Shown here piece after piece: positions 4,718 to 56,412 of a stretch of 64,000 bases of DNA. The stretch covers positions 558,001 through 622,000 of the forward strand of contig CDRNVI010000021.1 in NCBI GenBank assembly GCA_977017575.1. Direction: 5' to 3'. The first letter of the stretch is position 1, and each line of letters begins with the position of its first letter. Source of the stretch: Paramoeba atlantica (Eukaryota; Protista; Discosea). Position numbers and translations under genes: made by a program. Under the pieces are notes generated by a model. It made no database searches. It was not told the origin of the DNA and saw only the letters and a list, made by a program, of their open reading frames with translations.

Positions 4718-6328
4718 ATGCATTCTGACGGACGTTGCGACTTACAACTTCCTCCTCTGGCGTATAACACTTCTGGATGGGGTCCGCTACCAACGAAAGA
4801 GACTTTTTTAGATGTCCCCGTGGTTCCGATTACTCGGGTCGATCACTCCTACAAGGCTTGTGATTGGATTGGGATTACACCGTATGGCCAGAACGCAATG
4901 CGTGAGGTAGTAGAGGCCGAGGATGCTTTTGAGGTGGTCGACATTGGCAAGAAAAAGAAGAAAAAGTCTACAGGCGGTTTGCCACCCAAACCCGCGCAAC
5001 GGAACTTCGCCACTGCGGGGAAGCGTCCCGAAAGCAAACAACGAGGCGTAACTGACGCGCGTAAAGCGAGAGGGGGTAATCCCGGCCGTCCCCGTCATCT
5101 GGGAGATCAATCCGTCGGTCACCTCTCCTCTGTTCTTATTCGCGACCGGTGGGAGGCAAAGCACCGGATCCCGTTGAACACCTTAGAACGCAGTGGGGTT
5201 CACGTCTCCGTGTCTCCTGCCGAAGACCTCTCCTATCACGGTCACCTTCACACCTTCGATACTTCATTCGACTTTGTTAGTCCGTTAAAGCCGGTTCCCG
5301 TGAGAGCCCCCCCACGGACCCACCCCCACGTGTCACCTCTGGAGGACGAGGTGCTGCGTGAAATCGTGATGGCACGAGGTGAGGAGCAGGACGAACGTCT
5401 GTGTGTGGTGACCAATGAGAGTATCTTATCTACTCTACTCACGGCCCCCCGTAGTATCTTCTCCTGGGACGTAAAGGTCACGCGGGCTGGCCAAGTACTG
5501 TTTTTGGACTGGCGTGGAGATGACGACCTCGCGGATGCCTACACGGTAGATGAGACTTCCACTTGTCCCCCTGTTGACTCCGGTGAGGCCCCTCTGAGGG
5601 ATATTAACTCAGCGAGTAGTCTCTCCAAGGAAGCCACCAAACTCTGCCGGGATCTGACGCAAATGTTAGTAAACCCAAAGCAGCGCGCCAAGCTCACCCG
5701 GGAGGTTCCGCGTCACAAGAATGTATTTGATGCCACAGTTGAGGAGGGAGAAGACCCGGTGGCCTCAACAACATATCTGTATCGTCAATGGACGCTGCGC
5801 CGGGCCTCGGCACCGGACATTGTAGTCATATGCCGATGCCAAGTAGATGCCGTGCTGAAATCCGCCCCGAATAAACCAGGGGAGTTGTTACGTGTGTTTA
5901 CGTTAAACGAGCACAGTGGAAACGAATGGAAAAACAAAATGCAAACCGGTCGGGGTGCCGTTCTTGCACATTTCATCAAGACGAATGCGTGTAAGTTTAC
6001 TCGATGGGCGACAATGGCTACTCTTTCAGGCGTGGATAACGTAAAACTGGCCTACGCCACGCGATCCCTCTACAATAGCAACACCTCTCACCAGTTTCTA
6101 GGGCTTGACACAAAGCCTCCTAGTGAACTGGCAGCACAGGTGGGGTTGAACATGGGGAAGATGTGGAGTGCGTTCTGTGTGCTTGTGGATGCCACACTGG
6201 AGCTTGGGGACGGCAGTTACATGTTGGTTCGAGAAGCTGGAAAGGGAATGCTTACCCTGTATGATCTTGGGGACAGCGAAGATGAAGAAGAGCAAGGGGA
6301 GGTCTCGGAGGAAGAGGAAGATGCCTAG
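4718..6328 (+). CDS. EIF3D: Translation initiation factor 3 subunit D
   Basis: LPPLAYNTSGWGP and DW N-terminal motifs, APRSIFSWDVKV, YLYRQW, NACKFTRWA and an acidic tail. Confidence 0.85.
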   Translation: MHSDGRCDLQLPPLAYNTSGWGPLPTKETFLDVPVVPITRVDHSYKACDWIGITPYGQNAMREVVEAEDAFEVVDIGKKKKKKSTGGLPPKPAQRNFATAGKRPESKQRGVTDARKARGGNPGRPRHLGDQSVGHLSSVLIRDRWEAKHRIPLNTLERSGVHVSVSPAEDLSYHGHLHTFDTSFDFVSPLKPVPVRAPPRTHPHVSPLEDEVLREIVMARGEEQDERLCVVTNESILSTLLTAPRSIFSWDVKVTRAGQVLFLDWRGDDDLADAYTVDETSTCPPVDSGEAPLRDINSASSLSKEATKLCRDLTQMLVNPKQRAKLTREVPRHKNVFDATVEEGEDPVASTTYLYRQWTLRRASAPDIVVICRCQVDAVLKSAPNKPGELLRVFTLNEHSGNEWKNKMQTGRGAVLAHFIKTNACKFTRWATMATLSGVDNVKLAYATRSLYNSNTSHQFLGLDTKPPSELAAQVGLNMGKMWSAFCVLVDATLELGDGSYMLVREAGKGMLTLYDLGDSEDEEEQGEVSEEEEDA

Positions 6329-6721
6329 GCAGTGACGAATGGATCATATAGAATGCGCAACTGAATGTTGAATGGATAAGACGACATTGGGCCTTAGTCT
6401 GCTGAAAAATGCAATTTTGTTCTTTCTTTGTAAAGTCTACTTATTATTTAGCGCAGCATTTGGATAAGGAGGGGATCAGCTTTAAGAATTTTTCTAAGAC
6501 TTTTTACCTACAATTTATGCCTTTTAATATTGCTTTCGCAGAGCCAATATACACGGGAACATCAATACATCTTGTATCTCGTGTATATCTTATAGGACAT
6601 GACAGTTTTCACAATCTCTTACATTTTTTACTTCAAAAAAGACATCTTTACCTCCCAACCCCAATCTTCCACGTTCCCTCCATCTCCCTTTACCCATCCT
6701 CCTCCCTATTCCCCCCACCCC

Positions 6722-7979
6722 ATGCCCTACAAAGGAAAACGTCGCAAGAAGCGTCGCACCCATCTCACCCAACCCCCACCACCCCCCTCCTCCCCCTCCC
6801 CCACCACCCCCTCCCCTGCCCCCCTCCCCTGCTCCCTCCTCTACCACCACGGCCCCGCGGACCCCACCATGGACCGCCTCATCCGGGACTGCCGCAAGGC
6901 CCTCGCCCCCCACACCCTCTCCCACCTCCCCCCCCCACTCCCGCCACCCCCTGCGCGACCTCCTCGCGCTCGCCCCCGCGCTACGGCTCACCCACCTGTT
7001 TAAGTTCGCCAGCCCCCCGCGCGGGCCCACGCTCGCGCTCTCGCGCCTCCCCCACGGCCCCACGCTGTGCTTCCGGGTCCAGTCCTACACCCCGGGGAGC
7101 GGGGTGGTGGTGGGGAGGGGGGCACGGACCCGGGGGTGCGCGGGGGGGCAGCGGCAGTACCAGTACCCCCCGCTGGTGATGTGTAACGGGTTTGGGCGCG
7201 AGGGGGGGGTAGTTTGTGAGGAGGATGAAGAGGGTTCCGTCCCTACCCATAGAGAAGAAAAAAAGAAGTGGGTTTCAGGTTCGCGACTTCGCCCGGAGCT
7301 TGCGCTGACGTTGGAGATGTTGCAGTCGATGGTTCCGGAGCCCATGGTGGAGCGTCGTAGTGATTTGAGTCACATTCACCGTGTGGTGTTGTTTCATTTA
7401 ATGAAGCCCGGGGAGGTGGAGCGTGTGGAGGGGGGGAAGGAGGAGGAGGGGAGAGGGGAGGAAAAGACGCCTGTGGTGTTGGAGATGCGGCATTATACGG
7501 TACAGTCCCGTCCCACGGGGTTGAATCGGAGTATTGCGAAGCTCTCGGGGGGGAATGTCCCGGAGAGTTTTTCGTATGCGGAGAGTTTGTCCGAGGCGTT
7601 GAGTGCGGGGCCTGGGGGAGCTTCGGATACGGAGGGGGAAGGGGAGAATGTTGAACTTCCGCCCGCGCTGACGTTTCGTCGGCAGAAGGGTTCGCTCCGG
7701 GTGAAGCTGGTAGAACTGGGTCCCCGGCTCAGTTTGAGACTGCTCAAGGTGGAGAGCGGGGTGTGTGGGGGCGAAGTGATTTGGCATAGTTACGTTTCCA
7801 AGACCCCAGCAGAGGTGGCGCTCCTGGAGGAGAAAGCCCGTCACACCCGACGCGAGAACAAACGTCGGGCAAGGGAACGAGAAAAACAAAAGGCGGAGAA
7901 AGACGGAAAAGGTGTGGATAAAAAGCGTGAGACAACTAAACGCAGTGCTCCGTCGTTTGAAGAGTCTCCCGCACCGTAA
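6722..7979 (+). CDS. PPAN: Peter Pan/SSF1 Brix-domain protein, split by a frameshift in the C9 run at 6928-6936
   Basis: MPYKGKRRKKRRTH start. After removing one C the frame continues LRDLLALAPALRLTHL...RLPHGPTLCFRV...YPPLVMCNGF...LVELGPRLSLRLLKVESG, which is SSF1/PPAN-like. Confidence 0.85.
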
Positions 7980-8374
7980 GTCGCATTTAATGTAGTAGTG
8001 AAGATTTCAAAAGGAACAGATTTTCTAAAAACACTACTCACAATCAAGATCTGTAATTGAAGTGCTGCAATCACTTCACTACTTTGTCGATATGAATATT
8101 AAAATAGGTATGACGGACATTTTCGTTGTATGCTATCATACGCCGCACGCGCTTTTATAGAAGAATTAAAAGGGTATTGATTTCTTATTTTACGATACTC
8201 TGGTGAGGGATTTCACGTGATCTCGAGTTGACTCTTACCGACAGTCCCTCACATTTCTCAAAACTCTTATGAATTTCTCAAAAAAGTATAAGAACTCTAG
8301 CAGAAAGTTGCTTTATGAATTGGCGTCGTTCATCGGTTTATACTTAAATTTCTCCTTGAATATCTTCTGATTAC

Positions 8375-14572: not shown

Positions 14573-15026
14573 TGATTAACCGTTGGATTGTTTTCATTTG
14601 CTTTTGATTGTTTGACGTTTGAGTAGCTTCTGAATTTTCGTTTCGCACGGCTTTTTTGCTGGCTTACTGGTATTTTGGGCGTGTTTTTTCTTTGCTTTGT
14701 TCGCCTTTTGTAATTTAACGAAATCACTGTTTGGTATACGAGTCTAAGGTATAACGTAACTCACGAACCGACCGCGGAGTAAATTTGTTTAACCCTTCCG
14801 CAAAAGACATATTTTCCGCAGTACACTGAAGCCGTTAAGGAACTGCTAGAAAATGGTTTTATGATGTAGATAGTCGTTGAAATTTATAATCGTACTACAT
14901 TTCGTAGCAATATTTTAAGCGAAATTGCTTTGTGCATGTTTCGTAACTAAGTACTCTATTTGAAAGTTGAACAATTATACATGGCATAGATTCAATTGAA
15001 TCAATAACACCTTGTTTTACTCTTAG

Positions 15027-17081
15027 ATGGACAACGAGGTCATAAGGAGTCTCCACGCTGCTATTGATCGTTCACACCGGCTTCTGCTTCACCGCAATGC
15101 AATCTTTTTAGCTCATCGCCTCTATGAAATAAATCGGGATCTTAGCACAGCCCATATCTTAGCGCAGACTTACTACCTCGCTGGCGAAGTTCGAACCGTT
15201 TGTCGTTTTATAGAATCGCTCTATCCGTTTTCCTTGAATGATATCGTTGCCTATGCTCGCTTAATGTACTTATTTGGAGTAGCACAGGTGCAGGTGGGGA
15301 ATTTCAAGCAAGCTGAACGAACTTTAACTGAATTACGATATGCGTTGGAGTCAACTACGGAAGACATAGCACACGAAATTCGAGAAGACCTTTTCTGTGG
15401 AATACTTTATTGGACTTCAGAGTGCAAGAAACGGTTAGGCAGGCACGCAGAGGCAAAAAAGTCGTACTCACAGTGTTACTCTATAGATCCCACCCAAATA
15501 GCAGCGCTCGATGAAGCTTTGTGTGGAGGCGCCGATACGGATGATGTATTTCATAAATTTACAGCAGAACACTTTGATGCCGCATCTGAAAACGACACAC
15601 ACTGTAAGACGGAAAAACCGAACATGGCAAAGGAAAGTAATGAACCTGTCCCTTCCTCAGCCGAGTGCAAAACGTCAGACCCTTCTGCCGCCCCTCCCGT
15701 ATTCACACGTTCTCTTATAGGAAAACATCGGCGAAGTACGCTGGGTGGACTTACTATGCGTAGCTCCACTAGAACCACTCAGGGCTCAGCCTTGGATTCC
15801 TCTCTTGAATATTCCACTCCGGCTCCTGTGAGGAACTCTACCGCGAGGCGTACACCTCCCCCTCTCATGAAGTCGCCTCGACCCCGAAATCTTCACACCC
15901 CACCCTCAGAGCGTCGCCCGAACATGCTCGGACGTCGCACCCCATTGCAACAGTTCTCCAACTTAGTCCTTGACGGGCGACCGTCAAGTTACGGACGTCG
16001 GAGTACTTTTCTACACTCAACCCACATGGAGGACATAAGCCCCGAGAGCACTCACCCGCGACCTTTACGAAAAACCTACGCCCAGAGACTTCACTCCGTC
16101 GTGGATGTGCTAAAGCCCTACGTAGAGGCACGCCAGTGTCTCCGTGGGAGTAACACCAGTGGGCTGTCCTGTCTCACCAACGGGTCCTTCGCTACCGCAC
16201 ACAAACACGTGGAGTGGTATCTCCCGATGCTGGCGCAGACCTACTACGAGAGAGGGCTATACACGGAGGCGGTTCGGTCGTGGTCGACATACACCCGGCG
16301 CTATGCGTGGAAAATGGACCCCTCGCTTCTGTACTACAGTATAGCGCTGTGGCACACACGAGCCGTGGCTGAACTTCGTACCCTGGCACAGCGTTGTGTG
16401 GCCCAGGAACCGTTTTCCGTGATCGCTATGTGTGTTGCCGGTAACTACCACAGCCTTTGTGGAGAGGTAGAGGAGGCAGAGCGTCTGTTCACGCTTGCGA
16501 TTGGCGTGCAGGAGGATTTTGCGTACGGACATGTGTTACTTGGGTTCGAGCTTTTACGTCAGGAGGCGTGGAGGTCAGCATCAGAGCGCTTTCAACGGGC
16601 GTTAGATTTCGACCCACGTTTGTATGCGGCGATTGCGGGACTGGGCGAGGTGGAACGACGACGTGGTAAGTTTCCTCTAGCCATAACTTACTTTGAGGCA
16701 GCGCAAGCCTTGAAGCCTGAAAATCCTGCTCTAGCGACAGGCTTAGCAATGTCACTTGAAGAACTCGACGATGAAGAAGCACGCACTCGAGCTTTAAATA
16801 TTTATGATCAAATATTGGAAGTTGATTCTAAGAACCACAACGTACGCCATCGTCGGGCTCACTTGGAAATGCTTCGAACAAACTATGAAAAGGCTTTTCC
16901 TGATTTAGAATTCTTGCGGATTCACTGTCCAGAGGACGCGCTTGTACACCTCAATTTAGCGCGTTGTCATGAGAAACTCCGTCGGAAATCAGAGGCAATT
17001 TTCAACTACCAACGAGCCGCCGATTTGGATGAAAATTGGGCAGATGTAGCACGCATTTCTGTTCAAGAATTAGCTGTCTGA
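15027..17081 (+). CDS. CDC27: Anaphase-promoting complex subunit 3
   Basis: NAIFLAHRL N-terminal APC3 domain, a low-complexity S/T/P linker and a TPR block (YYSIALWH...CVAGNYHSL...FAYGHVLLGFE). Confidence 0.85.
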   Translation: MDNEVIRSLHAAIDRSHRLLLHRNAIFLAHRLYEINRDLSTAHILAQTYYLAGEVRTVCRFIESLYPFSLNDIVAYARLMYLFGVAQVQVGNFKQAERTLTELRYALESTTEDIAHEIREDLFCGILYWTSECKKRLGRHAEAKKSYSQCYSIDPTQIAALDEALCGGADTDDVFHKFTAEHFDAASENDTHCKTEKPNMAKESNEPVPSSAECKTSDPSAAPPVFTRSLIGKHRRSTLGGLTMRSSTRTTQGSALDSSLEYSTPAPVRNSTARRTPPPLMKSPRPRNLHTPPSERRPNMLGRRTPLQQFSNLVLDGRPSSYGRRSTFLHSTHMEDISPESTHPRPLRKTYAQRLHSVVDVLKPYVEARQCLRGSNTSGLSCLTNGSFATAHKHVEWYLPMLAQTYYERGLYTEAVRSWSTYTRRYAWKMDPSLLYYSIALWHTRAVAELRTLAQRCVAQEPFSVIAMCVAGNYHSLCGEVEEAERLFTLAIGVQEDFAYGHVLLGFELLRQEAWRSASERFQRALDFDPRLYAAIAGLGEVERRRGKFPLAITYFEAAQALKPENPALATGLAMSLEELDDEEARTRALNIYDQILEVDSKNHNVRHRRAHLEMLRTNYEKAFPDLEFLRIHCPEDALVHLNLARCHEKLRRKSEAIFNYQRAADLDENWADVARISVQELAV

Positions 17082-18063: not shown

Positions 18064-18671
18064 CATCTGGATTTTTTCATGTCTTTCTTTATCAAAATAT
18101 GTTAACCGAAGTACCTTGCTAATGAGTCTAAAGCGTTTACATACCTTGGACTTTAAAAGTCCAAGGAAACATCAATTGAACGATTAATTAAAGTCCTCCA
18201 GTAGTAGAAACTAGAAACCGAAGTCTCCCTTCCTTGCAGTTACATGTATGTATCTAAAATTATATTTAAAGCATATCTTGCCGGTGCTTTCTCTCATTAG
18301 ATTCCCTAACGCTTAAATTCGCCTTTAGATCCACTTACCGTAAAAACTTCAATTGCGGTGGTTGTATAACTACCGCTCTGCCCTCGATTATTGAAAAACA
18401 AGTGAAAACAGTGAAAATATATAGAGGAACACCGTAATGGAGTCCATGCAAGTGTGGCTGGCACTAGACCCCCTGCAACTTGACATCTTTTTTGGGTCCA
18501 CTCGGGGCCACGGTGTGGCACTGCTACTGGTCTTTGCTGATCATTTTTTATAATTTTAGTTGAGCAGATCTGGATTGTTACTGTTATTTCTTAAAAGTTG
18601 CCCCCTTGTGATGCAAAATGATACTCATTATTATTCTCTAGATTCGAACTCTCCATCTATTCAAAATTATT

Positions 18672-19610
18672 ATGATGGGAAAAATGTATTGTCCTCGCTG
18701 CAAGGTGGACCGCCACGTGTCTTTGGGGGAACCTATACGGTGTGTAATGTGTGCATGCACCATTGAAAGTGATGCAAAGGATCCTTGCATCCAATGTCAA
18801 AGGGTCTCTGTAATCATAGGCACGAACTACTGTCCTCTATGCAATGCTCCAAAGGATTCGGAACGACTTCTGCCCAGTGCCATCGACCATCTTCACGCTC
18901 GTGAGCTTCAAGAGACTAAAATTCTCAATGTGTGTGCAGAGTACGTTGGCCGCATGCTTTGAGGCACGAAACTCATGTTCGGTCACGTGGCACAGGTCCT
19001 TATCTTGATCAAGCGAGCTAAAGATGTTTCCATCAAGCGCTACATCTCTCGGAAGCAATATGCGCATACTTTAATCACCCACGCAACTCCCTGCAAGAAT
19101 TTCTTCGAAACATGTGGCGCATGTACGAGGTTGTGCGTGCGAACGAGAAAATTTTTCTCTTTTTCAAAAAGAGACTACGCGACGATCAAGCAGCTTTGGT
19201 GGAAAGCTTTTTATCGACCTTGTGGGATGCAAACCTTGAAGTTGATCCAAAGTTTTTTTCACCAAATTCAAGATGATGTCAAGGATAAACTTTTGGCTAC
19301 ACTGGAAGGAAGTGAAGTCACTTCCCTTAAAGATGACCTTCTACAACGTCGCATCATCAAACACCGAAAGACAGACAAATTCCACCTCGTCCACGTGGCG
19401 AGACCTCCGCCTCGTAGTTCCATCTCCGCAGAAGCTGAGGTTGAAATCGTAGAGATACGAGATACAAATAGAAGAAATGAGGTTAGCGGTCCGAAACGTC
19501 ATCGGAGCGACAGTATATTTATCGCCGGTTTTCGGGTCCACTCGGGGCCACCAAGGCCCACTGGGGGCCATGCTGGGTCACTCGGGCCCTGCATTGGGCC
19601 CACTGACTGA
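18672..19610 (+). pseudogene. Cys-rich (multiple CxxC) ORF interrupted by one in-frame TGA at 18960-18962
   Basis: ORFs 18672-18962 and 18975-19610 share a frame. Motifs CPRC, CVMC, CIQC, CPLC, CGAC. Embedded among GGGTCCACTCGGGGCCA repeats. Confidence 0.4.
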
Positions 19611-20880: not shown

Positions 20881-21310
20881 TCATGCACAACACAAAATGC
20901 TAGTCAAACCAAAAAGGCATACCAATCTTATTAGCCTGAAGGATTGGCCTGAGTATGCCTTTTCGGTTTTACAAGACTCCTTCAAGGAGTCTTGTTCGCA
21001 TTTCTTTGGAAAGTTATGGAACAACCATATCTGCTGTCCTGACTTTACTCTCGAAAGAGCAACGTAAACGGAAGCGTGAGTCAGCATACATCTGTGATAA
21101 GTTTATGGGCGTTGATTAAGATCAACGCACAAATTTCCCAGGACAGCAGCCCCTTGAACTTTGTGAATCGAATAAGAAAACCCGCAGCCAATTTCTAGTT
21201 CCTCGTCCAAGTCGTTCTTTCTAAACTCTACAGTCACTTTTTCGTCCAATGTGGTAGTGGCTATTCCGATAACGGAAAAATAAGTGCAGTCTAGTATTTC
21301 GCCCAGGCAT
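20881..21310 (-). pseudogene. PIF1/RecD-type (Helitron-like) helicase C-terminal relic
   Basis: Manual translation gives GFSYSIHKVQG...*...THASVYVALSRVKS (helicase motifs V/VI) with an internal TAA. Confidence 0.65.
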
Positions 21311-21702
21311 CATTTTTCTGTCATGTGTGCTTCTAGGCACTGTTTCGTTGTCCTGGGGCAGAGTAACGCCTAGTGGTCTTAAAGGGGGGCCACCATGGTG
21401 CATGGCTCCCCGAAAAAGCTGGGAACCATCCTTGAAAAACCGACAATTAGAAATCGCCATTGATTTCAATGGGATTGAGTCGGTTTGCCCCGTTTCGTTC
21501 AGGTGCCGTTTTTTTAAGTTTCACCTCTCTAACTAGGAATATTTTCTCGCGATGTGATGCTTCCTGTCCATCTCCTTGTACTCACCATCCTCACCCTACC
21601 AATTCTTATAATTCCTCATTTACTCTCCTTTCGTAGTTATTTTCTTTATTTCTCTCTCCCTCTCCCTCTTTCTTTTCCTTCTCTCCTTCTTCTCCCTCCC
21701 CC

Positions 21703-22260
21703 ATGGCCTCCGAATCCCTCGGCCTCTCCCCCGAACCCTCCCCCTCTCCCCTCCGCGATAACTCACCCCCCTCCTCCCCCACCCTCCCCCCCGCATTACC
21801 CGGCACCACCACCACCACCGGCGCCAAAGTCGCGGCCAAAACCCGCGGCAAGGGCGGCAAAGCCAAGACCGGGAAATCCGCCGGCAAGACCAGCGGGAAG
21901 GTCCGCAAGCCCCCGCTGTCACGCTCCGCTCGGGCGGGGCTGCAGTTCCCCGTCGGCCGCATCCACCGTCGACTAAAACAGGACTTGCTCCGTCACCAGC
22001 GCTGTGGGACCAGTGCGGCGATCTACACCGCGGCGCTGGTGGAGTACCTCACCGCGGAGGTGCTGGAACTCGCCGGCAACGCGTGTATGGATCTAAAGGC
22101 GAAACGGATCACCCCGCGGCATATCCTCCTCGCGGTGCGCGGGGATGAGGAGCTGGACGCGGTGGTGCGGGGGACGATTCGTGGCGGGGGGGTGGTGCCG
22201 CAGCTGCACCGGATGCTGCTGAAGAAGAATAAGACGCCGAAGAAACAAAAGAGCGGCTGA
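21703..22260 (+). CDS. H2AZ: Histone variant H2A.Z with N-terminal extension
   Basis: [26 protein letters not shown] (kinetoplastid-like), [18 protein letters not shown]. Confidence 0.9.
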
Positions 22261-40792: not shown

Positions 40793-41351
40793 GCGAAACG
40801 CTCTATACGCTCTATATGCATAGTGAACAATTTTGATACAAGAAATAAAAGAAAGCAGGGTATACAGCAGGGTAATCTGAAATTGGTAATAATCGATGTG
40901 TATGTAATTTTTGTGATTTCAATATGTGTTTTGGGGTCTTGATATCGCTTTCACAAGCTCTTGCACAGATCTTTGCATGAAATTGGTAGCTCTAGTTTCA
41001 TCGAACGATGAAAGAATCAAATTAAAAGCTCTCGCGGTGCTCTTTGTAGTCTGTAATGGGGTAAAATACGGTAGTGCATTGAAATTTGTTTACTTCACTT
41101 TATCCTGAACTAAAAAAGCATACCCAAGAATGTATACAGTACATATGTAGAAGTAAGTACTACACCCCCCTACATAATTGTCACCCCCCACCCCCCCTAC
41201 TTATTTGTCATTTCTGGGAATGACAAAACTTCGGGGAAGTTTCATAAATTTTTATTTAGGAAAAATTAATTAGCGGGGGTACACATCCCACGCGCTTTCA
41301 ACCAGCGTCTAGCTCAAGGCCCGGATGTTCAACTCCAGTGCACCACCTCAT

Positions 41352-42736
41352 TGTCAATTCCAGCGCACCACTTTTTTCACCATAGTCGACCGTCATTCCT
41401 TTCTTCTGCGCCTCACCATAGTTGAACATCGTTCTTTTTTCCTTTCAACATAAAAACTTATCCAGAGTATTTAAAGAAAGCGTAGTACAAGTGTAAGATC
41501 TGAGTAAGAAACTTTATTAGACAAGAATTTCTTCACCTTTGCAAAATTCTTAAATTTATTGTCATTAAATTTCCAACACTAACAGACTAACTTTACAAGC
41601 TTTCTCACGTACCTTTGCTTACTTAGCTCCTTTTACTTACGCAGTTCATTCACAAAATCCATTGGAGAACGATCATTTAATAATTTCCGAGGACGAGTGT
41701 TCAATTCCAATGCTGTTTTGTTTAATTCACTTTGGTTCAAATTCTCAAAAGATTCGGTTTTCTGATGGAATTGTCGGATCAAACCGTTTACATGTTCCAC
41801 AGACCCTTTCTCCCACGAATGATACGGAGCGCAAAAGAAAGACTTGCATTTTAATTTTTTGTTTACTTCTTCATGGTGCCAGAATTCTGTTCCGTTGTCA
41901 TATGTGATTGTTTGAACCTTGTAATTTTTTAACCCGTCTACAATTTGTTTGCTTACCCCCTTCGCGTGCTTAGATTCCAACTTGCGAAGAACAAGGAAGC
42001 GACTCTTACGCTCGCACAGGGTAAGAATATATCCAGTATGTCCTCGACCCTCGACCAAGTCTGCTTCCCAATCTCCGTAGCGCCGACGCTTATTAACAAT
42101 TTCTGGTCGATTTTCAAGTGGCGTTCGGTTGGGAATCGCGCTGCGATCAGGTCTGGTGCGACGACGGTATGGTCTCTTTCGCCGGATCCGCAAATGGGTG
42201 TACAACTTGCCGCCTAAGGACGCGTTGCGACGAATATGGCGATATATGGTAGAAGTCGAGGCGGTACGACAGCTACGGATCGTATTTGCAATCTGTTCCG
42301 GGCTGTGCTTCTTTTGAAGTCGAGAGCTGACTTCCTCTTCCAAAAGGCCTTGAATCTGGTGAGGCTTGACCTTTTTACACGAGAGACGTCTTTTCGAAAT
42401 GCGCTGTGCCCTCGTCCCCTCATAGCGCTGACCCCTTCTTGCATTACGAGCCAACTCGCGACAAACAGTGCTGTGACTTTTGCCAATTATGCGAGCTATG
42501 CTTCGCCGACTCTCGCCAGATGTAAAGAGTGATTGAACACGATTACGATCGTAATGACTGAGTCTTGAATAATGGCGCATTTGTAGTGTAGATCCGAAGG
42601 ATATTATAAAATAATACTTCTTTAAATAATTGATGGTGCATTGGAAATGAGAATACAGTTTTTAAGAAAAAGTGGTGCACTGGAAATGATAAGAAAATTA
42701 TTTTTTGGGAAAAAAAGTGGTGCGTTGGTGTTGACA
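41352..42736 (-). mobile_element. IS30-family insertion sequence (1385 bp)
   Basis: IRs TGTCAATTCCAGCGCACCACTTTTTT and TGTCAACACCAACGCACCACTTTTTT (23/26 identical), with AT duplicated at 41350-51 and 42737-38. Confidence 0.85.
41633..42580 (-). CDS. IS30-family DDE transposase, intact (315 aa)
   Basis: HTH (IARIIGKSHSTVCRELARN), GDWEADLV, ITYDNGTEF, PYHSWEKGSVE, and LNTRPRKLL. Confidence 0.95.
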   Translation of the reverse strand: MRHYSRLSHYDRNRVQSLFTSGESRRSIARIIGKSHSTVCRELARNARRGQRYEGTRAQRISKRRLSCKKVKPHQIQGLLEEEVSSRLQKKHSPEQIANTIRSCRTASTSTIYRHIRRNASLGGKLYTHLRIRRKRPYRRRTRPDRSAIPNRTPLENRPEIVNKRRRYGDWEADLVEGRGHTGYILTLCERKSRFLVLRKLESKHAKGVSKQIVDGLKNYKVQTITYDNGTEFWHHEEVNKKLKCKSFFCAPYHSWEKGSVEHVNGLIRQFHQKTESFENLNQSELNKTALELNTRPRKLLNDRSPMDFVNELRK

Positions 42737-43376
42737 ATCCGCCAGGTGCTTGCGTGTATGACACATGTAAAGTATCCGGGGCATCATACGGGAGTGAAAG
42801 TCTTCATCTGGGGGGGGGTCTAAAATTCGTAAAAATTGTGCAAATTTGAAAAAGAATGGCACGTTCGAAATCTCTCGCTGAACAAATCAAGTAAGACCAA
42901 AAGACGCCGTAGCATTTCTTTTCTTTTTGCAGTAGTGCCATGATACACTGTTTCACTGCTTTCTTTCATTGCTTTTTTCCTAATCGGGGGTAGAGTACTT
43001 TTAGCGGGCTAAAATCACCAATAAATATCTACAGTAGACGTGTATTAGAAGCAATTTTCTCTTTCTTTCTCCGATTGCTCTGCATGATGATTTTTATGGA
43101 AGGCAAGAAACATGAGTTTCTAATGACTTCAATACACTATGCACCACGCTGATTCTTTTCAAAACACATGGTGTAGATTTATTATTTTTGCGATTTTCTG
43201 TGCTGATATAACTACGGGTTAAAGTATTATGAAAATCACCTACGATACGTACACAGAAACGCGGCGAGCGTGTATCAATTTTTATGCTGCTTACTGTTTT
43301 CCTCAATCCTGTAGTACTCAATCCTGTATTTTGAACTAATCTAAAGACTTTTTTTTAGCATTATTGATCTACAAGT

Positions 43377-47270: not shown

Positions 47271-49289
47271 AGCGACATACTCAATAGTTTGTTCTATTTC
47301 GCCACATGGTGATATTCCACTAGATTCGTTATTGGTCAAATTAGTTCTGGATTTTGCTACACTATTCATTGAGAATGTTTTTCTTTTTTGGGGGCATGTC
47401 TTTATTCGGGTATGTTCTTCCGCGAAGAGTCTCGATATCTATTCTCGAGAAGTTTTGATTTGATTTTCTTTTTTATTGATGAAGATGTATTATTTGTTTC
47501 TCTTCAAACCGGGTGACTCATAATGCGGTTAAATGTAGTACAGTAATACAGTAAATAGAGATAAGTATAAGAAACTCGGGCAAACTGAAGCGAGTGTCTC
47601 ACCTTAGAAGAATACTAAACTTGATCGTCATCAAGCTGGCGCTTAATCTTAATGCTTGTTTTTCAATTATTGGCAACATTATAGCACTAGCTTTCAATTG
47701 ATTTCTACAAAACGTGTTTGCAAAGAAAATTAATTTATGAAATTAATTTTTATGCAGTGTTTTATTTGAACTTTTAGAACGACCTCTATTTAGTCCACAA
47801 TATGTTCCCTGTTGCCTCCAGAGGAAATTTTATTTCCTCTGATGTTATCAGCCTCTATGGTTCACTTCTTCAAAAACTTTGTAAACTGGCGTTACGTAAG
47901 AGAAAGAAACATGTGCTGCAGAAACAATTGAAAATTGAAGTTTTATGCCTCTTGAAAGCTTGTATGAGCATGTCACCTAGCTGATGCGGAACTACAAATC
48001 GGAATACGAATCGCACACAACCATTAAACTTGCCTTTTCCTTGCATTATATTAATACTTTTATTTTGACTCACTTTCGGTCTGTAAGTTCACATGTTGCT
48101 TAGCATGTATTGAGAATTCTGCTAAAAATCGTACACATAGTAGAAATTTCAATATTATCCAAGCAAGTGATTAAGCATCGTATTTTTGCTACTTACACGA
48201 CTCCGCTCTATCTTTTTTCTTTGTACAGGCTGTACTTTTTGTAGTTGGCAACCTTGGATGACGTGATGATAGAAGCTTGTACCGTACGATGTGAATTAAG
48301 GAGTTCTTGTAATCCGCTGTTTAAGGAATTTGAAATTATTGTCCAGGCTCAGAACCAGGACCAAGATATAGCTCATACATTTTCTTGTTTCGTATATTTT
48401 ATTAAGGGAAGTACGAACTTAAAAGTTTTTGGGGGGAAAAAAGTCCTTTTTGACCAAAAGCAAGAACTCAACAGTATTAAAAATAGACCATTCACGCACG
48501 TTGCCGTTCTTTCTTAAGGTTTCTACTTGATAAAAAAAATGGCTTGCCTTTTTTCTCATCTCTTCTCGCGTACCAATTTCATACCTTTTGGTTCGCTGGT
48601 GTGTTCACTGGTCCTCTTTTCTCCCAACTCTCTTGTTTCTATACAAATGTTTCTATTTTTTCTTCTGAAAATGTGTTAAAACGCTTATTTGGGTTACCCC
48701 CGAGGCCCCGGCATGCAGACACCCACCCCCTACTCCATATACGCCTCCTGTGGGGCTCCCGAGCGAAATATCTCTTACTGGGGGTCAGCTCAAAAATTAT
48801 ATTCCTGTACCCTATAGGAATAGAGGATAGGAATTAATGTCGGTGTGGTAGCTGCTTCATTAAAAGGCGGTGGTTGTTGGTAAACGGGGCTTCGCAAATT
48901 GCTTTCCACTAACTACGTCGCGTATGGGTGAAAATGTAACCACCGGGAGTCGAGCCTTCGACCACCACATTGTGAATGGCAGGTCTTACCTACTGGACTA
49001 CCTGGGTTCGAGTCACGGGACCTACGTTTATAAGCACCGTGATTTATGCCCAAATCGAAGATAGGGGGACTGGGCCCCCTTTTCTCGCCCTCCAAGATCC
49101 ACCCAACCCCGGACACCACAAAGAAGGGAGAGGCAGAGGTTGTAAACAACACCCGCAATATTCCTATATCCTCTCGTATTCCTACCAGAAATATTAAGTG
49201 TCCCAATGGTGTTTAATACCCCCCTCCTCCACAACTATCCCGGTCTCTACTTGAGATCCATAAATTTCCTCACTTACATTTGAGTGTGA

Positions 49290-49405
49290 TGAAACTTTGC
49301 GAAAGCTCGGTGAAACTTCGGTGACACCTCGTGAAACCTCGAAACCTTGATAAAACCCTCTATGAAACCTCGCGAAACTTCGGTGAAACCTCGTAAAACC
49401 TCGCT
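49290..49405 (-). repeat. Array of ~10-bp GAAAC(C/T)TCG motifs (TE subterminal-like)
   Basis: About 10 degenerate copies. The reverse complement resembles the GGTTTC/GGTTTT arrays elsewhere in the window. Confidence 0.55.
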
Positions 49406-49716
49406 ACCAGCAGCCCCTCATTTCCATTTTTTCATGATGAGTTTTTCATCGTTATGGCAAGAAAAACGCACACACAAGCCAAAAACAGACAAAAACGGGC
49501 ACAAGAGTAAATATCGCGCCGCGAAGCGTCGCGAAAAATAATTTGTCCTTTTTCGCTATTTTTTTATATTCCTATACCTCGTAATATTCCTACCAGGAAT
49601 ATTACAGTAACCCGAACACTGGTTTAAGTCCCTTTGTTTTTCATTCCTGTAGCACCGAATTGCATCTTTCTCTCCTCCAACATCCACGTACCCCCCTCCC
49701 CATCTCCCCTGTATAC

Positions 49717-50856
49717 ATGACCGACACTCCTTGTGACACCGAGGACACCGAGATCCCCACGCTCACCCCTGCCGTTGTCCCCGTCACCCTACTCACCGGG
49801 TTCCTTGGCTCCGGGAAGACCACCTTACTCCATCACATCCTCAACGCCCCCCATGGGCTACGCATCGCGGTCGTGTTAAACGAGTTCTCCGGGGCCACCT
49901 CCTTTGAGAGAGGTCTCTCGGTGGCCTCCTCCGAGATGGAGGACGAGGACTGGGTGGAGATGCCCAATGGGTGCCTGTGCTGCACCGCCAAGGACCGTGC
50001 CGTGGAGGCGATTGAGGCTCTCGTGGCGTCCCGTCCAATTGATCATGTCCTCGTCGAGGCCTCCGGGCTGTCGGATCCGGGACCCGTGGCGGGGATGTTT
50101 TGGAAAGACGACGCGATGGGTTCCGGGCTGCGGCTGAATGGGGTTGTCGCCCTCGTGGATCTGTCCAGGGTACGGGACTACCTTCGTGGAAGGCACGCGG
50201 TGGCGGAGGCGGAGCGGCAAATCTTGCTTGCGGATGTGGTGTTGCTTAACAAGACAGATTTAGTGGAAAAGGATGAGGTGGAGGAATGGGTGGCGGAGGT
50301 TTCCGCAATTAACCCTACAGCGCTTGTCAAATGTACAGCATTCGCAAAGCTGTGTGATCTGCGTGAATTGCTCAGCATGAATCGTTTAGCGAAATCCTTT
50401 GGTTTATCAAGCGAACGGAATACTCCGGGCGTATACACGTCTGAGGAAGAATCACTACACAAGCATTCTATTACCCACATTTTCTACACTTTTCCTCATC
50501 CCTTACCCAACAAGAACGCTCTGGATGTATTCGCTAATGCACTGCTGTGGTCAAGGCATCGCGATGAACAACCGAAGTGTCAAGAGCTGGATTCTGAATC
50601 CGACGAGTTACCAGAGGTTATTCGTGCAAAAGGTCTATTTTTTGTTGAATCCTCTGAAAATGAAGGCAAGGAATATATTTTTGAGGCGGTTGGGGAACTA
50701 TACGAATTTCGTGAATCTTTTAATCCTTCCCAAAAGTATAACTTAAATGATGAACTCAATAAGGATCTTAAATCTTCAGTTCTTGTTCTTGGAAGGCATT
50801 TGTCAAATGATTTTGTGAAATCTTGCTTCGATCGTTGCCTAAGACCCATGTCATAG
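49717..50856 (+). CDS. CobW/COG0523 zinc metallochaperone GTPase (ZNG1/CBWD-like)
   Basis: LTGFLGSGKTT, NEF, GCLCC, EASG and NKTD motifs. Confidence 0.9.
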   Translation: MTDTPCDTEDTEIPTLTPAVVPVTLLTGFLGSGKTTLLHHILNAPHGLRIAVVLNEFSGATSFERGLSVASSEMEDEDWVEMPNGCLCCTAKDRAVEAIEALVASRPIDHVLVEASGLSDPGPVAGMFWKDDAMGSGLRLNGVVALVDLSRVRDYLRGRHAVAEAERQILLADVVLLNKTDLVEKDEVEEWVAEVSAINPTALVKCTAFAKLCDLRELLSMNRLAKSFGLSSERNTPGVYTSEEESLHKHSITHIFYTFPHPLPNKNALDVFANALLWSRHRDEQPKCQELDSESDELPEVIRAKGLFFVESSENEGKEYIFEAVGELYEFRESFNPSQKYNLNDELNKDLKSSVLVLGRHLSNDFVKSCFDRCLRPMS

Positions 50857-52641: not shown

Positions 52642-54113
52642 ATGAACATTGTTAAAATAATGTGTAGATTCGTTTCCTGTGCTGAAATACAGCCTTATCG
52701 TGCTCCGCGAAAAGTTTCTTGTGCACTTCTTCCACCTGAATTTCTCCTTGCTCAATTTGTCCCTGACATTGAGGGTACGCACGAAAGTTGGAACTCGGAA
52801 ACCCCTGTTCACGATTGGGTCGGTGTCAAATGTGATGAGGCAGGCCAAGTAAAAGCTATTCAGTGGGAATCACTATATCTTAAAGGTACCCCTCGGTGGT
52901 CTTTTCTTTGTCATACAATAGTGGATTTTTCTGCACCTATAAATGAGTTGAACGGAACTCTTCCTTTTGTGGAGTTTCCTCATGGACTAGTTATCCTAAT
53001 TCTTCTGCGAAACAAATTTTTTGACACTTTCCATGCACGGGATCTTCCACAGTCGATGGAAATACTTAACCTGGGGCATAATGCTTTATACGGTCCCGTC
53101 GAATGGGATAGCTTGCCTAAGACTTTAGAGCGTCTTAAATTAAGATAGATCTTATATAAATAAAGATACAGTTTCTGTACCTTGTTGTTCATCCTTTCTT
53201 TCCCCGGCAACGGGCATACTCTTACTGTATTTTCATGCCCGTTGCCGGCCGGCACTAAGGTCGGAACTGTCCCTCTTGTCGCTGAAGCAGGGGACGCGCT
53301 TTCACCACTTCACCCCTCCCCGACTCACTCCCCTGGAGTGAGTGTGCCTCCCCCTCTCGGCTTTTTTTCGACTTGTCTTTTTCCTCTCCGAGAGGGCCAT
53401 GCGTCACGGTGGCCTCCCTTGAGGACCACTAGACGTGTCCTCCGCCGACGAGACTCGGCTCTCTGCACCTGGCGGTCGCCCAGCTCTCCGTACCTCGGCT
53501 CTGTCGCAGCTCTCTGCACCCGGATTGCCCCCGAAACTATAATATGGGGATTACGCATCCGGCTCTCTGCACCTGCACATGACAACCGAGCTTTCTGCAC
53601 CTGGGACGCCAGCTCTCCGCACCCGCACACCTCCGGCGAGGACGAAACCTCACATGATCCACCCGTCGTATGCGGGATAAGGACATGGTGAGCAAATCTC
53701 TGCACTATAAGTGCATGATAAAACACTTTCTTACCTCGAATCGTCTAGAAGGAGAATTATCCATTGCAGAACTTCCCCGCTCACTGAGTTATCTAGCCGT
53801 TAATCAGAATCTATTTGTAGGTTCTCTGGATCTTAAGGCACTTCCGGACTCTGCGCGCAATGTTTATTTTCACAGCAACGGTTTTTCGGGGGAAATTAAT
53901 CTGGCAAGGCTTCCCGATTCTTTGAATAGCCTTTATTTGGATGAGAACAACCTCACTGGGGTCGTGAACGTGGGGCATTGTCCTTCTACTCTGTCTGCGT
54001 TGGGTTTGCAAGGCAATTGTTTTACAAGACTGGAAGGAAGTGCTCCTAGTTGCAGCATTGGGTTGGAGCCGAATTTTTCAATACCAAAGGGAACAAGAAA
54101 GCAGTACTCTTAA
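52642..54113 (+). pseudogene. LRR paralog 4, interrupted by a ~590-bp insertion
   Basis: The N-half ends ...LPKTLERLKL (53142) and the C-half resumes TSNRLEGEL (53733), together completing one LRR consensus. Confidence 0.8.
53143..53732 (+). mobile_element. Insertion headed by a spliced-leader-like 39-mer, with hairpins and GCTCTCTGCACC repeats
   Basis: AAAGATACAGTTTCTGTACCTTGTTG at 53162-53187. Parts are homologous to 20111-20270 (+) and 21357-21483 (-). Confidence 0.6.
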
Positions 54114-55380: not shown

Positions 55381-56412
55381 TCAGGATGTCCTGTTTAAAA
55401 TCCTGATTAAAAAAAGGAAGGAATATGCTTTCTTTCTATTTTTTGACTCCTTGGGGTTGTACGGAACATATTCAATGTTATCTTTGAGATGATCCCTTCT
55501 CGATGAAACGTTCTCTACTACTCCACACCCTTTACTACACCAACACTCCTTGGCACAATCAATCGTGCGAAGAGCCGAGTTTATCGTGGTGTCAAGATCA
55601 TACTGCGGTTCATCCGCTAACAAACCATAAACAACCACCAACACAATTTGGAGCGCATCTTTCAACCACGAAAGATCGTGATCCGTACCCCAGAAAAAGC
55701 GATATTTGTCAAAATGTGAAAAAGAGCGTTCTATACGCGAGCGGATCAAGGAAACTCTCTGATTGACTTTGTGCTCAGCATTGCTAACCTTTTTCTTTCT
55801 TGAGGACTTATACGGAACTAAGCAATGGTCGCAACCAATGTAGCCTAAGTCCGCAAGAAACATTTCATTTTTATGATGATCAAAAAGAAATGTTTTGTGA
55901 TCACCAGTGTTTTTAGAAATGCTTGCATCATGAAGACTTCCCACTACCGGGCCACGAAAGAAAAATGGAGCGCGTGCCAGAGTTAACCAGAATTCTACTT
56001 TGAAACAATGTTTTCGGCGTTTTCCTGAATAAGTAAAATCTTTGCTAGTAAACCATTTATTGTACCATTTATTGTGTGGCTTTCGTGCACAACATGGAAT
56101 TATCGTAATCATGCAGTTTACGTCGCTCAGCCACGGGATACCTTGCTGAAACCTCAAGGCAGGATTCGCAAGAAAGGGGGAGCGACAAAGCTCAGCGACT
56201 CGGTGAAAATCTTCGCGGAGGGTACGGATAGACACAGAAGGGACCTCGGGAGATGTCCACACAGCATGTAGGTCGTGCAACTGCTCCCAAGAACAATTAA
56301 GTGCACACATACACAACGAAGACTGTAATCGGCGGAAGTCTGCAGGTGTCATACTCGTTCCATGTACGCTTTTCAGCTCGTCGAACAGTTGTTCGCGAGT
56401 AATACCATACAT
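55381..56412 (-). CDS. PIF/Harbinger-ISL2/IS5-like DDE transposase (DDE_Tnp_4 type)
   Basis: YSGKRRKH, GSLHD, FLADLGYIG and N-x6-RSRIERSF. The first catalytic Asp is not evident (MITIIP). Confidence 0.75.
   Translation of the reverse strand: MYGITREQLFDELKSVHGTSMTPADFRRLQSSLCMCALNCSWEQLHDLHAVWTSPEVPSVSIRTLREDFHRVAELCRSPFLANPALRFQQGIPWLSDVNCMITIIPCCARKPHNKWYNKWFTSKDFTYSGKRRKHCFKVEFWLTLARAPFFFRGPVVGSLHDASISKNTGDHKTFLFDHHKNEMFLADLGYIGCDHCLVPYKSSRKKKVSNAEHKVNQRVSLIRSRIERSFSHFDKYRFFWGTDHDLSWLKDALQIVLVVVYGLLADEPQYDLDTTINSALRTIDCAKECWCSKGCGVVENVSSRRDHLKDNIEYVPYNPKESKNRKKAYSFLFLIRILNRTS

Follow-up and report, generated by a model that had tools for sequence, protein, structure and literature searches.

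The window analysed here is a stretch of 64,000 nucleotides from Paramoeba atlantica (contig CDRNVI010000021.1, positions 558,001 to 622,000), and it carries a transposable element of 1424 bp, very probably derived from the bacterial IS30 family, at positions 41320..42743. Its transposase gene lies on the minus strand, and its extent is fixed by copies that match it from end to end and by a contig that represents the empty site. The eukaryotic gene setting proposed in an earlier note on this DNA, made from the sequence alone, is borne out: the window encodes a leucine-rich repeat (LRR) protein, eIF3d (eIF3 subunit D), the proteasome protein Rpn9, HOP, an APC3-like protein and a class I tRNA synthetase, and the first five of these flank the element. 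All but two of the 24 open reading frames (ORFs) of at least 220 aa are on the plus strand. The window also contains a 39-mer comprising ACAGTTTCTGTAC, which we take to be the conserved core of kinetoplastid spliced leaders. The window is nuclear DNA of a kinetoplastid-like eukaryote. Other copies of the element adjoin the gene of ribosomal protein S13, Piwi/PAZ genes, ubiquitin and retroelements.

The borders of the element were established from three kinds of evidence. Two further copies, L004 (98.2% identical) and L005 (96.6%), which are located on other contigs of the ENA assembly of the same organism and whose flanks are unrelated to those of the window, align over exactly positions 1-1424 of 41320-42743. 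Contigs from public runs (Logan) part from the window at 41319/41320 and at 42744 and continue into other sequences. Finally, a 606-bp contig of run X3 joins 41316 straight to 42744, with three bases (AGG) that fit either side; it is an empty site that keeps a single AGG triplet. Because the full-length copies, the points where contigs diverge and the empty site agree, the element is 1424 bp long and is accompanied by a 3-bp target-site duplication. This duplication, AGG, is found at 41317..41319 on the left and at 42744..42746 on the right, both unstranded and both read from the empty-site joint and the printed flanks. The borders 41352-42736 and the 2-bp AT duplication given in the earlier note are ruled out by these data, the true termini being 41320 and 42743, but its conclusion that the duplicated target reflects a true transposition event is upheld by several loci with a duplication of their own and by the empty site, which it had named among the checks to be made. 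Perfect 3-bp duplications were observed at all four independent insertions that could be read, namely AGG in the window (CCT/AGG), GAT in L004, TTT in L005 and ATC in L002, a perfect triplet being expected by chance once in 64 per insertion. The same junctions are present in a second assembly record. No joint connecting 42743 back to 41320, as expected of joined ends, was observed among the contig joints listed, which come from contigs that drop rare forms.

With regard to the ends of the element, the terminal inverted repeat at the transposase-proximal (5') end occupies 42717..42743 on the minus strand, begins with GGCGGATTGTCAAC, ends with GCACCAC, and shares homology with the GGTGGATTCAA...AGTGCA termini found in bacterial relatives. 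The terminal inverted repeat at the transposase-distal (3') end occupies 41320..41346 on the plus strand, outside the borders first proposed, and begins with CCCGGATGTTCAAC. The two 27-bp termini are imperfect, matching from base 3 at 20 of 25 positions. Additional copies of the repeat are located further in. On the 5' side, two subterminal copies of the core are found on the minus strand within 42633..42695 (42672-42695 and 42633-42656), 45 and 39 bp further in, in the 163-bp 5' non-coding part. On the 3' side, a second, subterminal copy occupies 41347..41372 on the plus strand. The 26-bp inverted repeats reported previously do form an inverted pair, but the left partner is this inner copy and not the terminus. 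The window element exhibits three cores at the 5' end and two at the 3' end, and the extra internal copies noticed previously are confirmed by four matches to the repeat core against 0.29 expected by chance. The rest of the 3' non-coding part (41373..41632, minus strand) contains a direct repeat of 31 nt (41377-41407 and 41413-41443), as well as a weak, inverted sixth copy of the end motif at 41408-41431, with 8 mismatches in 24 positions and a chance expectation of 0.05.

The non-coding parts measure 163 bp before the ATG and 313 bp after the ORF (37% G+C), the latter in place of the spacer of ~255 bp estimated previously, and the ORF represents 67% of the 1424-bp element. No significant fold is predicted for the 3' non-coding part (z = -1.4), and an Rfam scan of the window gave no match. 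No Shine-Dalgarno sequence is present upstream of the transposase ATG, in agreement with the earlier note, and a scan for sigma-70 promoters and terminators around the element revealed nothing above chance, nor any site resembling a promoter on the minus strand. Inside the repeats of the 5' non-coding part, upstream of the ATG, there are pyrimidine tracts with an AG after them; it may be speculated that these sites act as trans-splice acceptors.

The transposase ORF (41633..42580, minus strand) encodes 315 aa and comprises an HTH_38 domain (residues 3-46) and an rve-type DDE core (residues 167-255), both according to Pfam. The NCBIfam model of IS30 family transposases, NF033563, scores 244.8 bits against a cut-off of 80 and is covered from position 1 to position 267 of 267, while other models are far under their cut-offs (59.5 against 224 for IS481, and likewise for IS21). 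The catalytic triad is formed by D174, D228 and E262; the second D and the E are separated by 33 residues, which corresponds to a DD(33)E motif, and all three catalytic residues are invariant in 251-252 of 252 aligned homologues. The intact transposase of 315 aa with helix-turn-helix (HTH) and full DDE motifs that had been recognised from the sequence is thus confirmed. The protein is colinear with bacterial transposases over its whole length, without any added domain. Its basic stretch, LRIRRKRPYRRR, is a feature of the family and could, in our view, double as a nuclear localisation signal. A search by sequence for solved structures returned none. By every protein and end criterion, the element would be classified in the IS30 family: it matches the IS30 model, exhibits HTH and DDE motifs, carries terminal repeats of about 20-30 bp, and generates a duplication of 2-3 bp. 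It departs from the usual members of the family, which are compact (~1.0-1.25 kb), nearly filled by the ORF, equipped with one site per end, and hosted by prokaryotes.

The closest relatives of the transposase are found in the same eukaryotic assembly. Among 5.8 billion protein clusters, the best non-self match is P0003 (57% identity, encoded by L002), followed by matches of at most 49%, and a search without a word index of 1.84 billion representatives returned only short proteins above 50%. Three of these short proteins, together with P0003, P0121 and P0122, were looked up (P0195, a 107-aa fragment at 94%, was left out), and all the relatives above 50% that were looked up come from one assembly, ERZ24900291. 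In contrast, the best bacterial and archaeal relatives in 185,579 species genomes are 40-47% identical over their full length, with 50% for one partial match. They belong mostly to the Verrucomicrobiota, with some Planctomycetota and Pseudomonadota, and no bacterial relative above 50% identity was found in the 5.8 billion clusters and the 185,579 species genomes. No closer relatives were found in metagenome and viral collections either, protist genomes being thinly represented in the collections searched. An exact search for the terminal repeat in metagenome contigs gave no match, and a protein-pattern search of the same contigs gave a best match of 50%, which is the compact bacterial-type element L003. 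A viral vector was considered and rejected, as the best relatives on viral contigs are only 39-41% identical, originate from seemingly prophage-type records, and revealed no closer link.

When 84 sequences are placed in a tree, all six from the protist group together (SH-aLRT 86) within a Verrucomicrobiota-rich clade with 100% support. In a tree of 72 rows with denser metagenomic sampling, the two 315-aa copies, P0003 and P0174 form a 100/100 clade with a stem of 0.62, and P0187 and P0235 pair with each other at another place in the Verrucomicrobiota-rich radiation. The transposase phylogeny suggested previously places the window group in a well-supported clade without any bacterial member. 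The nearest sampled relatives of the family are in Verrucomicrobiota and other aquatic bacteria.

To compare the ends, the borders of bacterial elements were fixed from repeated copies, and four such elements were checked. The bacterial relatives are 1061-1214 bp long and begin with GGTGGATTCA; an AGTGCA-type core is found at position 16-17 in three of the four, and is replaced by CTAACGAATA in the Verrucomicrobiae element L018. Those with clear borders, including L018-L020, exhibit 3-bp duplications. The nearest known systems are bacterial IS30 elements with a transposase of ~317 aa, such as a 1214-bp element present three times in a Verrucomicrobiae metagenome-assembled genome (L018-L020) and a 1083-bp element (L003/L169). 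The protist element shares with them a single transposase with an N-terminal HTH and a DD(33)E core, termini of the type GG.GGATT..CAA....AGTGCA, and the 3-bp duplication. The conserved termini and duplication length point to the same chemistry. Several features are different: the protist protein is only 40-50% identical to its bacterial counterparts, and the element resides in a eukaryotic nucleus, measures 1424 bp instead of 1061-1214 bp and comprises non-coding parts of 163 and 313 bp. It also lacks a ribosome-binding site, whereas L003 has GAGGAA upstream of its ATG. The most characteristic difference concerns the repeat cores, of which there is exactly one per end in all four bacterial elements and two to three per end in the protist elements. 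The element in L002, which belongs to a subfamily with 57% protein identity, has two and three cores per end, and L006 carries a related terminus, GTGGATTGTCAATGTCAGTGCAACA, with extra inner copies. Because the bacterial elements carry one core per end, the multiplied end repeats are derived and common to diverged protist subfamilies. The end motif of the window subfamily is absent from L007, L008 and a second L004 fragment, which therefore have other ends. The P0187 and P0235 subfamilies are flanked by long, near-perfect hairpins and by inverted arrays of ~19-bp repeats (L007 1513-1975 and 3817-4159; L008 3169-3285, 4372-4561 and 5086-5671), and their ends are unlike those of the window element.

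With regard to copy number, the earlier note had proposed counting copies and duplications across the genome, and this count was obtained in part, from read depth and from the four insertions with 3-bp duplications. The element is covered 4-10 times as deeply by reads as its flanks. In terms of word depth, run X1 gives 390-1088 for the element and 76-120 for the flanks, and run X3 gives 60-420 and about 25-57, respectively. The ends of the element are deeper than its middle, and one contig skips 42498-42713; both observations fit additional copies with internal deletions. In X1, the L004 type and not the window type prevails at eight positions; the window copy is therefore a minority sibling of a more abundant and nearly uniform set. 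The transposase genes of the window and of L004 differ at 14 codons, with nine synonymous and five non-synonymous changes, which corresponds to a dN/dS of 0.155 (binomial p = 0.0009 against neutrality). L005 exhibits two frameshifts, and its changes are mostly at first and second codon positions, as expected of a dead copy. The G+C content of the element is host-like. Likewise, its relative synonymous codon usage (RSCU) correlates with that of host genes (r = 0.53) as well as host genes do among themselves (mean 0.55), in contrast to the bacterial-type element L003 (-0.05).

The copy in L002 (9755-14376) belongs to the older subfamily, and close to its 3' end the gene has a frameshift and a stop. 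It is interrupted by a G+C-rich insertion of ~3 kb with a minus-strand ORF of 765 aa, its 3-bp duplication ATC persists, and RVT_1 retroelement genes are located downstream of it. In L004, a degraded IS30-like fragment is present on the minus strand at 18670-18967, which is 55-62% identical to residues 35-130.

The transposase is antisense to the flanking genes in the window and in L005, as well as on that side of L002 where genes are present; for L004, which is located in a transposon-rich stretch, the orientation is ambiguous. The same antisense bias was described for Merlin elements in kinetoplastids, for which a faster loss of sense copies was suggested (PMC8101967).

Based on these results, we consider it very probable that the family descends from bacterial IS30 elements and is today resident and mobile in the nucleus of a kinetoplastid-like protist. 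The element has 27-bp imperfect terminal inverted repeats and a 3-bp duplication, near-identical copies are found at unrelated loci, and there are older, diverged sister subfamilies. The idea put forward in the earlier note, that a complete IS30-family element has truly transposed in a eukaryote and is possibly adapted to it, is supported by the several loci, the empty site and the diverged subfamilies. The adapted lineage is further backed by the lack of any bacterial relative above 50% in the collections searched, a dN/dS of 0.16, host-like codons and the multiplied end repeats. A more detailed scenario can be drawn, in which an IS30 element of aquatic, Verrucomicrobiota-like bacteria entered a bacterivorous, kinetoplastid-like flagellate and gave rise to a lineage ('IS30EU'), a new group of eukaryotic DNA transposons of the cut- or copy-and-paste kind, that became adapted to the nucleus, is still active, and is still polymorphic between strains. 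We favour this scenario, if only with limited confidence. The adaptation would consist of the multiplied end repeats, the loss of bacterial expression signals and the use of host transcription and trans-splicing. By analogy with IS30, the N-terminal helix-turn-helix would bind the core CCAGTGCACCAC, which is present two or three times per end, and the DD(33)E core would cleave the termini and join them to a target cut with a 3-bp stagger. The process would probably involve an intermediate with joined ends (circle or dimer), which leaves the donor copy in place.

Several observations weigh against this interpretation. The flanks of the empty-site contig differ from the window by about 5%, so the contig may come from a diverged allele or strain, or else from a paralogue of the flanking sequence; either way it defines the insertion, and no paralogue of the window flanks is found among the fetched loci. 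The run data consist of short contigs that break at repeats, in which no single read across a filled junction was seen, and the second assembly (L001) may derive from the same reads. A small RNA run with the same species label covers the neighbouring LRR gene and not the element. The lineage was found in one organism only, in the databases searched, and the six protist sequences fall into two groups in the denser tree. Finally, the window copy exhibits an aspartate at position 303, a site that is Y, F or W in 214 of the 252 homologues and D in none of them; it also has V15, where 227 of 252 have I. The transposase of L004 retains both I15 and Y303. Because D303 is located at a conserved aromatic site, the transposition competence that had been attributed to this copy is uncertain, although its ends are intact. 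Even if D303 impairs the enzyme, the window copy could be moved in trans by a transposase of the majority type.

These points have to be weighed together with other explanations of the same data. Among these, separate transfers from related bacteria, for instance prey, could account for the diverged subfamilies in place of diversification inside the eukaryote. This is in line with the position of P0187 and P0235 apart from the window group and with the union of all six sequences in only 6% of bootstrap trees, and the host is seemingly of a bacterivorous flagellate type, although this is our own deduction. Forcing the six sequences together costs 7.1 log-likelihood units (AU p = 0.25); a single origin is thus not rejected, and two origins are possible. 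The four sequences of the window group, which already hold two subfamilies, form the 100/100 long-stem clade without a bacterial member, and these subfamilies share the multiplied end motif missing from the bacterial relatives. We regard separate transfers as the origin of the subfamilies as unlikely. A recent, one-off transfer of an ordinary bacterial IS30 element, which would now be decaying and not maintained by the eukaryote, could explain why the protein is colinear with bacterial transposases without an added domain, why termini and duplication length are as in bacteria, why some copies are broken (two frameshifts in L005, an interruption and a frameshift in L002), and why the element is without coverage in the small RNA run. 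Such a transfer is hard to reconcile with the failure to find a bacterial relative above 50% in the 5.8 billion clusters and 185,579 species genomes, with at least two subfamilies at 57% protein identity that share derived multi-repeat ends, with several independent insertions, with the dN/dS of 0.16 or with the host-like codon usage, and we consider it improbable.

Contamination or an assembly chimera, in which an element of a co-cultured or endosymbiotic bacterium has been misjoined to protist DNA, was named in the earlier note as a scenario that would refute its reading, and might be suspected since no single long reads were viewed across the junctions. Nevertheless, four insertions in different eukaryotic contexts exhibit perfect 3-bp duplications (1 in 64 each), the exact empty site has the triplet once, the junctions recur in the second assembly record, and G+C content and codon usage are host-like, which leaves a very small probability for this explanation. 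The purifying selection observed between two copies would also be compatible with a transposase domesticated as a host gene and no longer part of a mobile element. In contrast to what this predicts, the sequence is multi-copy with intact terminal repeats and fresh duplications, its presence is polymorphic, its copies are at unrelated loci and many of them are broken, and no single orthologous, syntenic copy devoid of ends was seen across species. Domestication is accordingly just as remote. A mobile family of IS30 descent resident in the protist nucleus remains by far our preferred explanation.

To our knowledge, the IS30 family has so far been described only from bacteria and archaea. In agreement with the statement in the earlier note that no eukaryotic superfamily derived from IS30 is established, no report of a eukaryotic IS30 lineage was found in the searchable literature. 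The name 'IS30EU' appears in no paper there, and searches pairing IS30 with kinetoplastid, protist or eukaryotic DNA transposon superfamily returned nothing relevant. The closest precedents are IS481EU, IS3EU and ISL2EU, eukaryotic superfamilies that take their names from prokaryotic IS families and for which an origin by transfer from prokaryotes was proposed (PMC10045372). Like these, the window family is a eukaryotic, multi-copy DDE transposon that is nearest to one prokaryotic IS family; unlike these, its parent is IS30 and its known host is a single organism. The 2023 paper on IS481EU, which reviews the IS families with eukaryotic counterparts, contains no occurrence of IS30 and expects further 'ISxEU' groups (PMC10045372). 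Like such groups, the window family occurs in several copies in the nucleus of a eukaryote, and its independent loci exhibit terminal repeats and duplications. A clade of eukaryotic copies apart from prokaryotic elements is seen for the window group of four, and for all six protist sequences in the sparser tree but not in the denser one. A superfamily label is premature, as the lineage is known from one organism only.

A survey of all IS families in 430 eukaryote genomes by Gilbert and Cordaux in 2013 found only IS607 (PMC3673617). The IS607-like sequences were observed in the genomes of protists and fungi; intact copies were among them and purifying selection was indicated, but neither terminal repeats nor duplications could be demonstrated, and transposition in the eukaryote was left open (PMC3673617). 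The window family is a similar case of a prokaryotic IS family in a protist genome, in which repeats and duplications are demonstrated. The Merlin elements of Bodo saltans and Perkinsela, of the IS1595/Merlin family with 8-bp duplications, were the first DNA transposons reported in kinetoplastids, and their copies were judged inactive or unresolved (PMC8101967). They resemble the window family in that they are DNA transposons with a prokaryotic IS relative and are oriented opposite to the neighbouring genes; the window family differs by its several near-identical copies and its empty site. In its end architecture only, the window element also appears similar to transposons with more than one copy of a presumed binding motif per end, such as Tc1/mariner elements of the IR-DR type (Sleeping Beauty). 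The latter exhibit several transposase-binding repeats per end and a TA duplication, whereas the window element generates a 3-bp duplication and, among DDE transposases, belongs to a different and unrelated family.

Hardly any prokaryotic IS families are known to have passed into eukaryotes and to have remained mobile there. Transposition of the IS30 family in a eukaryote is proved directly by the terminal repeats, by the 3-bp duplications seen at four loci and by the empty site. The family represents a natural experiment on the nuclear life of a bacterial transposon, in which the protein remained unchanged, the ends gained repeats and the non-coding parts grew. As the host is without gene-specific promoters, expression of the element must come from polycistronic or antisense transcription. 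A transposase of the IS30 type able to function in the nucleus of a kinetoplastid-like protist could be developed into a genetic tool for such organisms.

Other mobile sequences are present in the vicinity of these loci. ORFs for transposases of the pogo/Tc1 type (DDE_1, DDE_3) and of the Merlin type (DDE_Tnp_IS1595) are found in L004 (17727-20470) and in L006 (2677-3636), and the genome holds several DNA transposon families. In the window, the only other minus-strand ORF of at least 220 aa (55381-56412, 343 aa) encodes a DDE_Tnp_4 protein of the PIF/Harbinger type (E = 5e-15), and is also antisense to the gene cluster. Close to the element, contigs of several runs break away from the window at 41158-41220 and at 42802-42852, depth is about 1.7 times that of the flank at 41073-41269, and a C-rich direct repeat, CCCCCCTAC.TA.TTGTCA, is found in this region; the insertion possibly took place in, or next to, a different family of short repeats. 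Within an LRR-gene region, the segment 53143-53732 starts with a spliced-leader-like sequence containing ACAGTTTCTGTAC, followed by G+C-rich sequence, and looks like a spliced-leader-associated insertion. Islands of 50-60% G+C with a strong strand skew, against a background of ~40%, are observed at window positions 5001-8000, 15001-17000, 21001-22000, 49001-50000 and 53001-54000.

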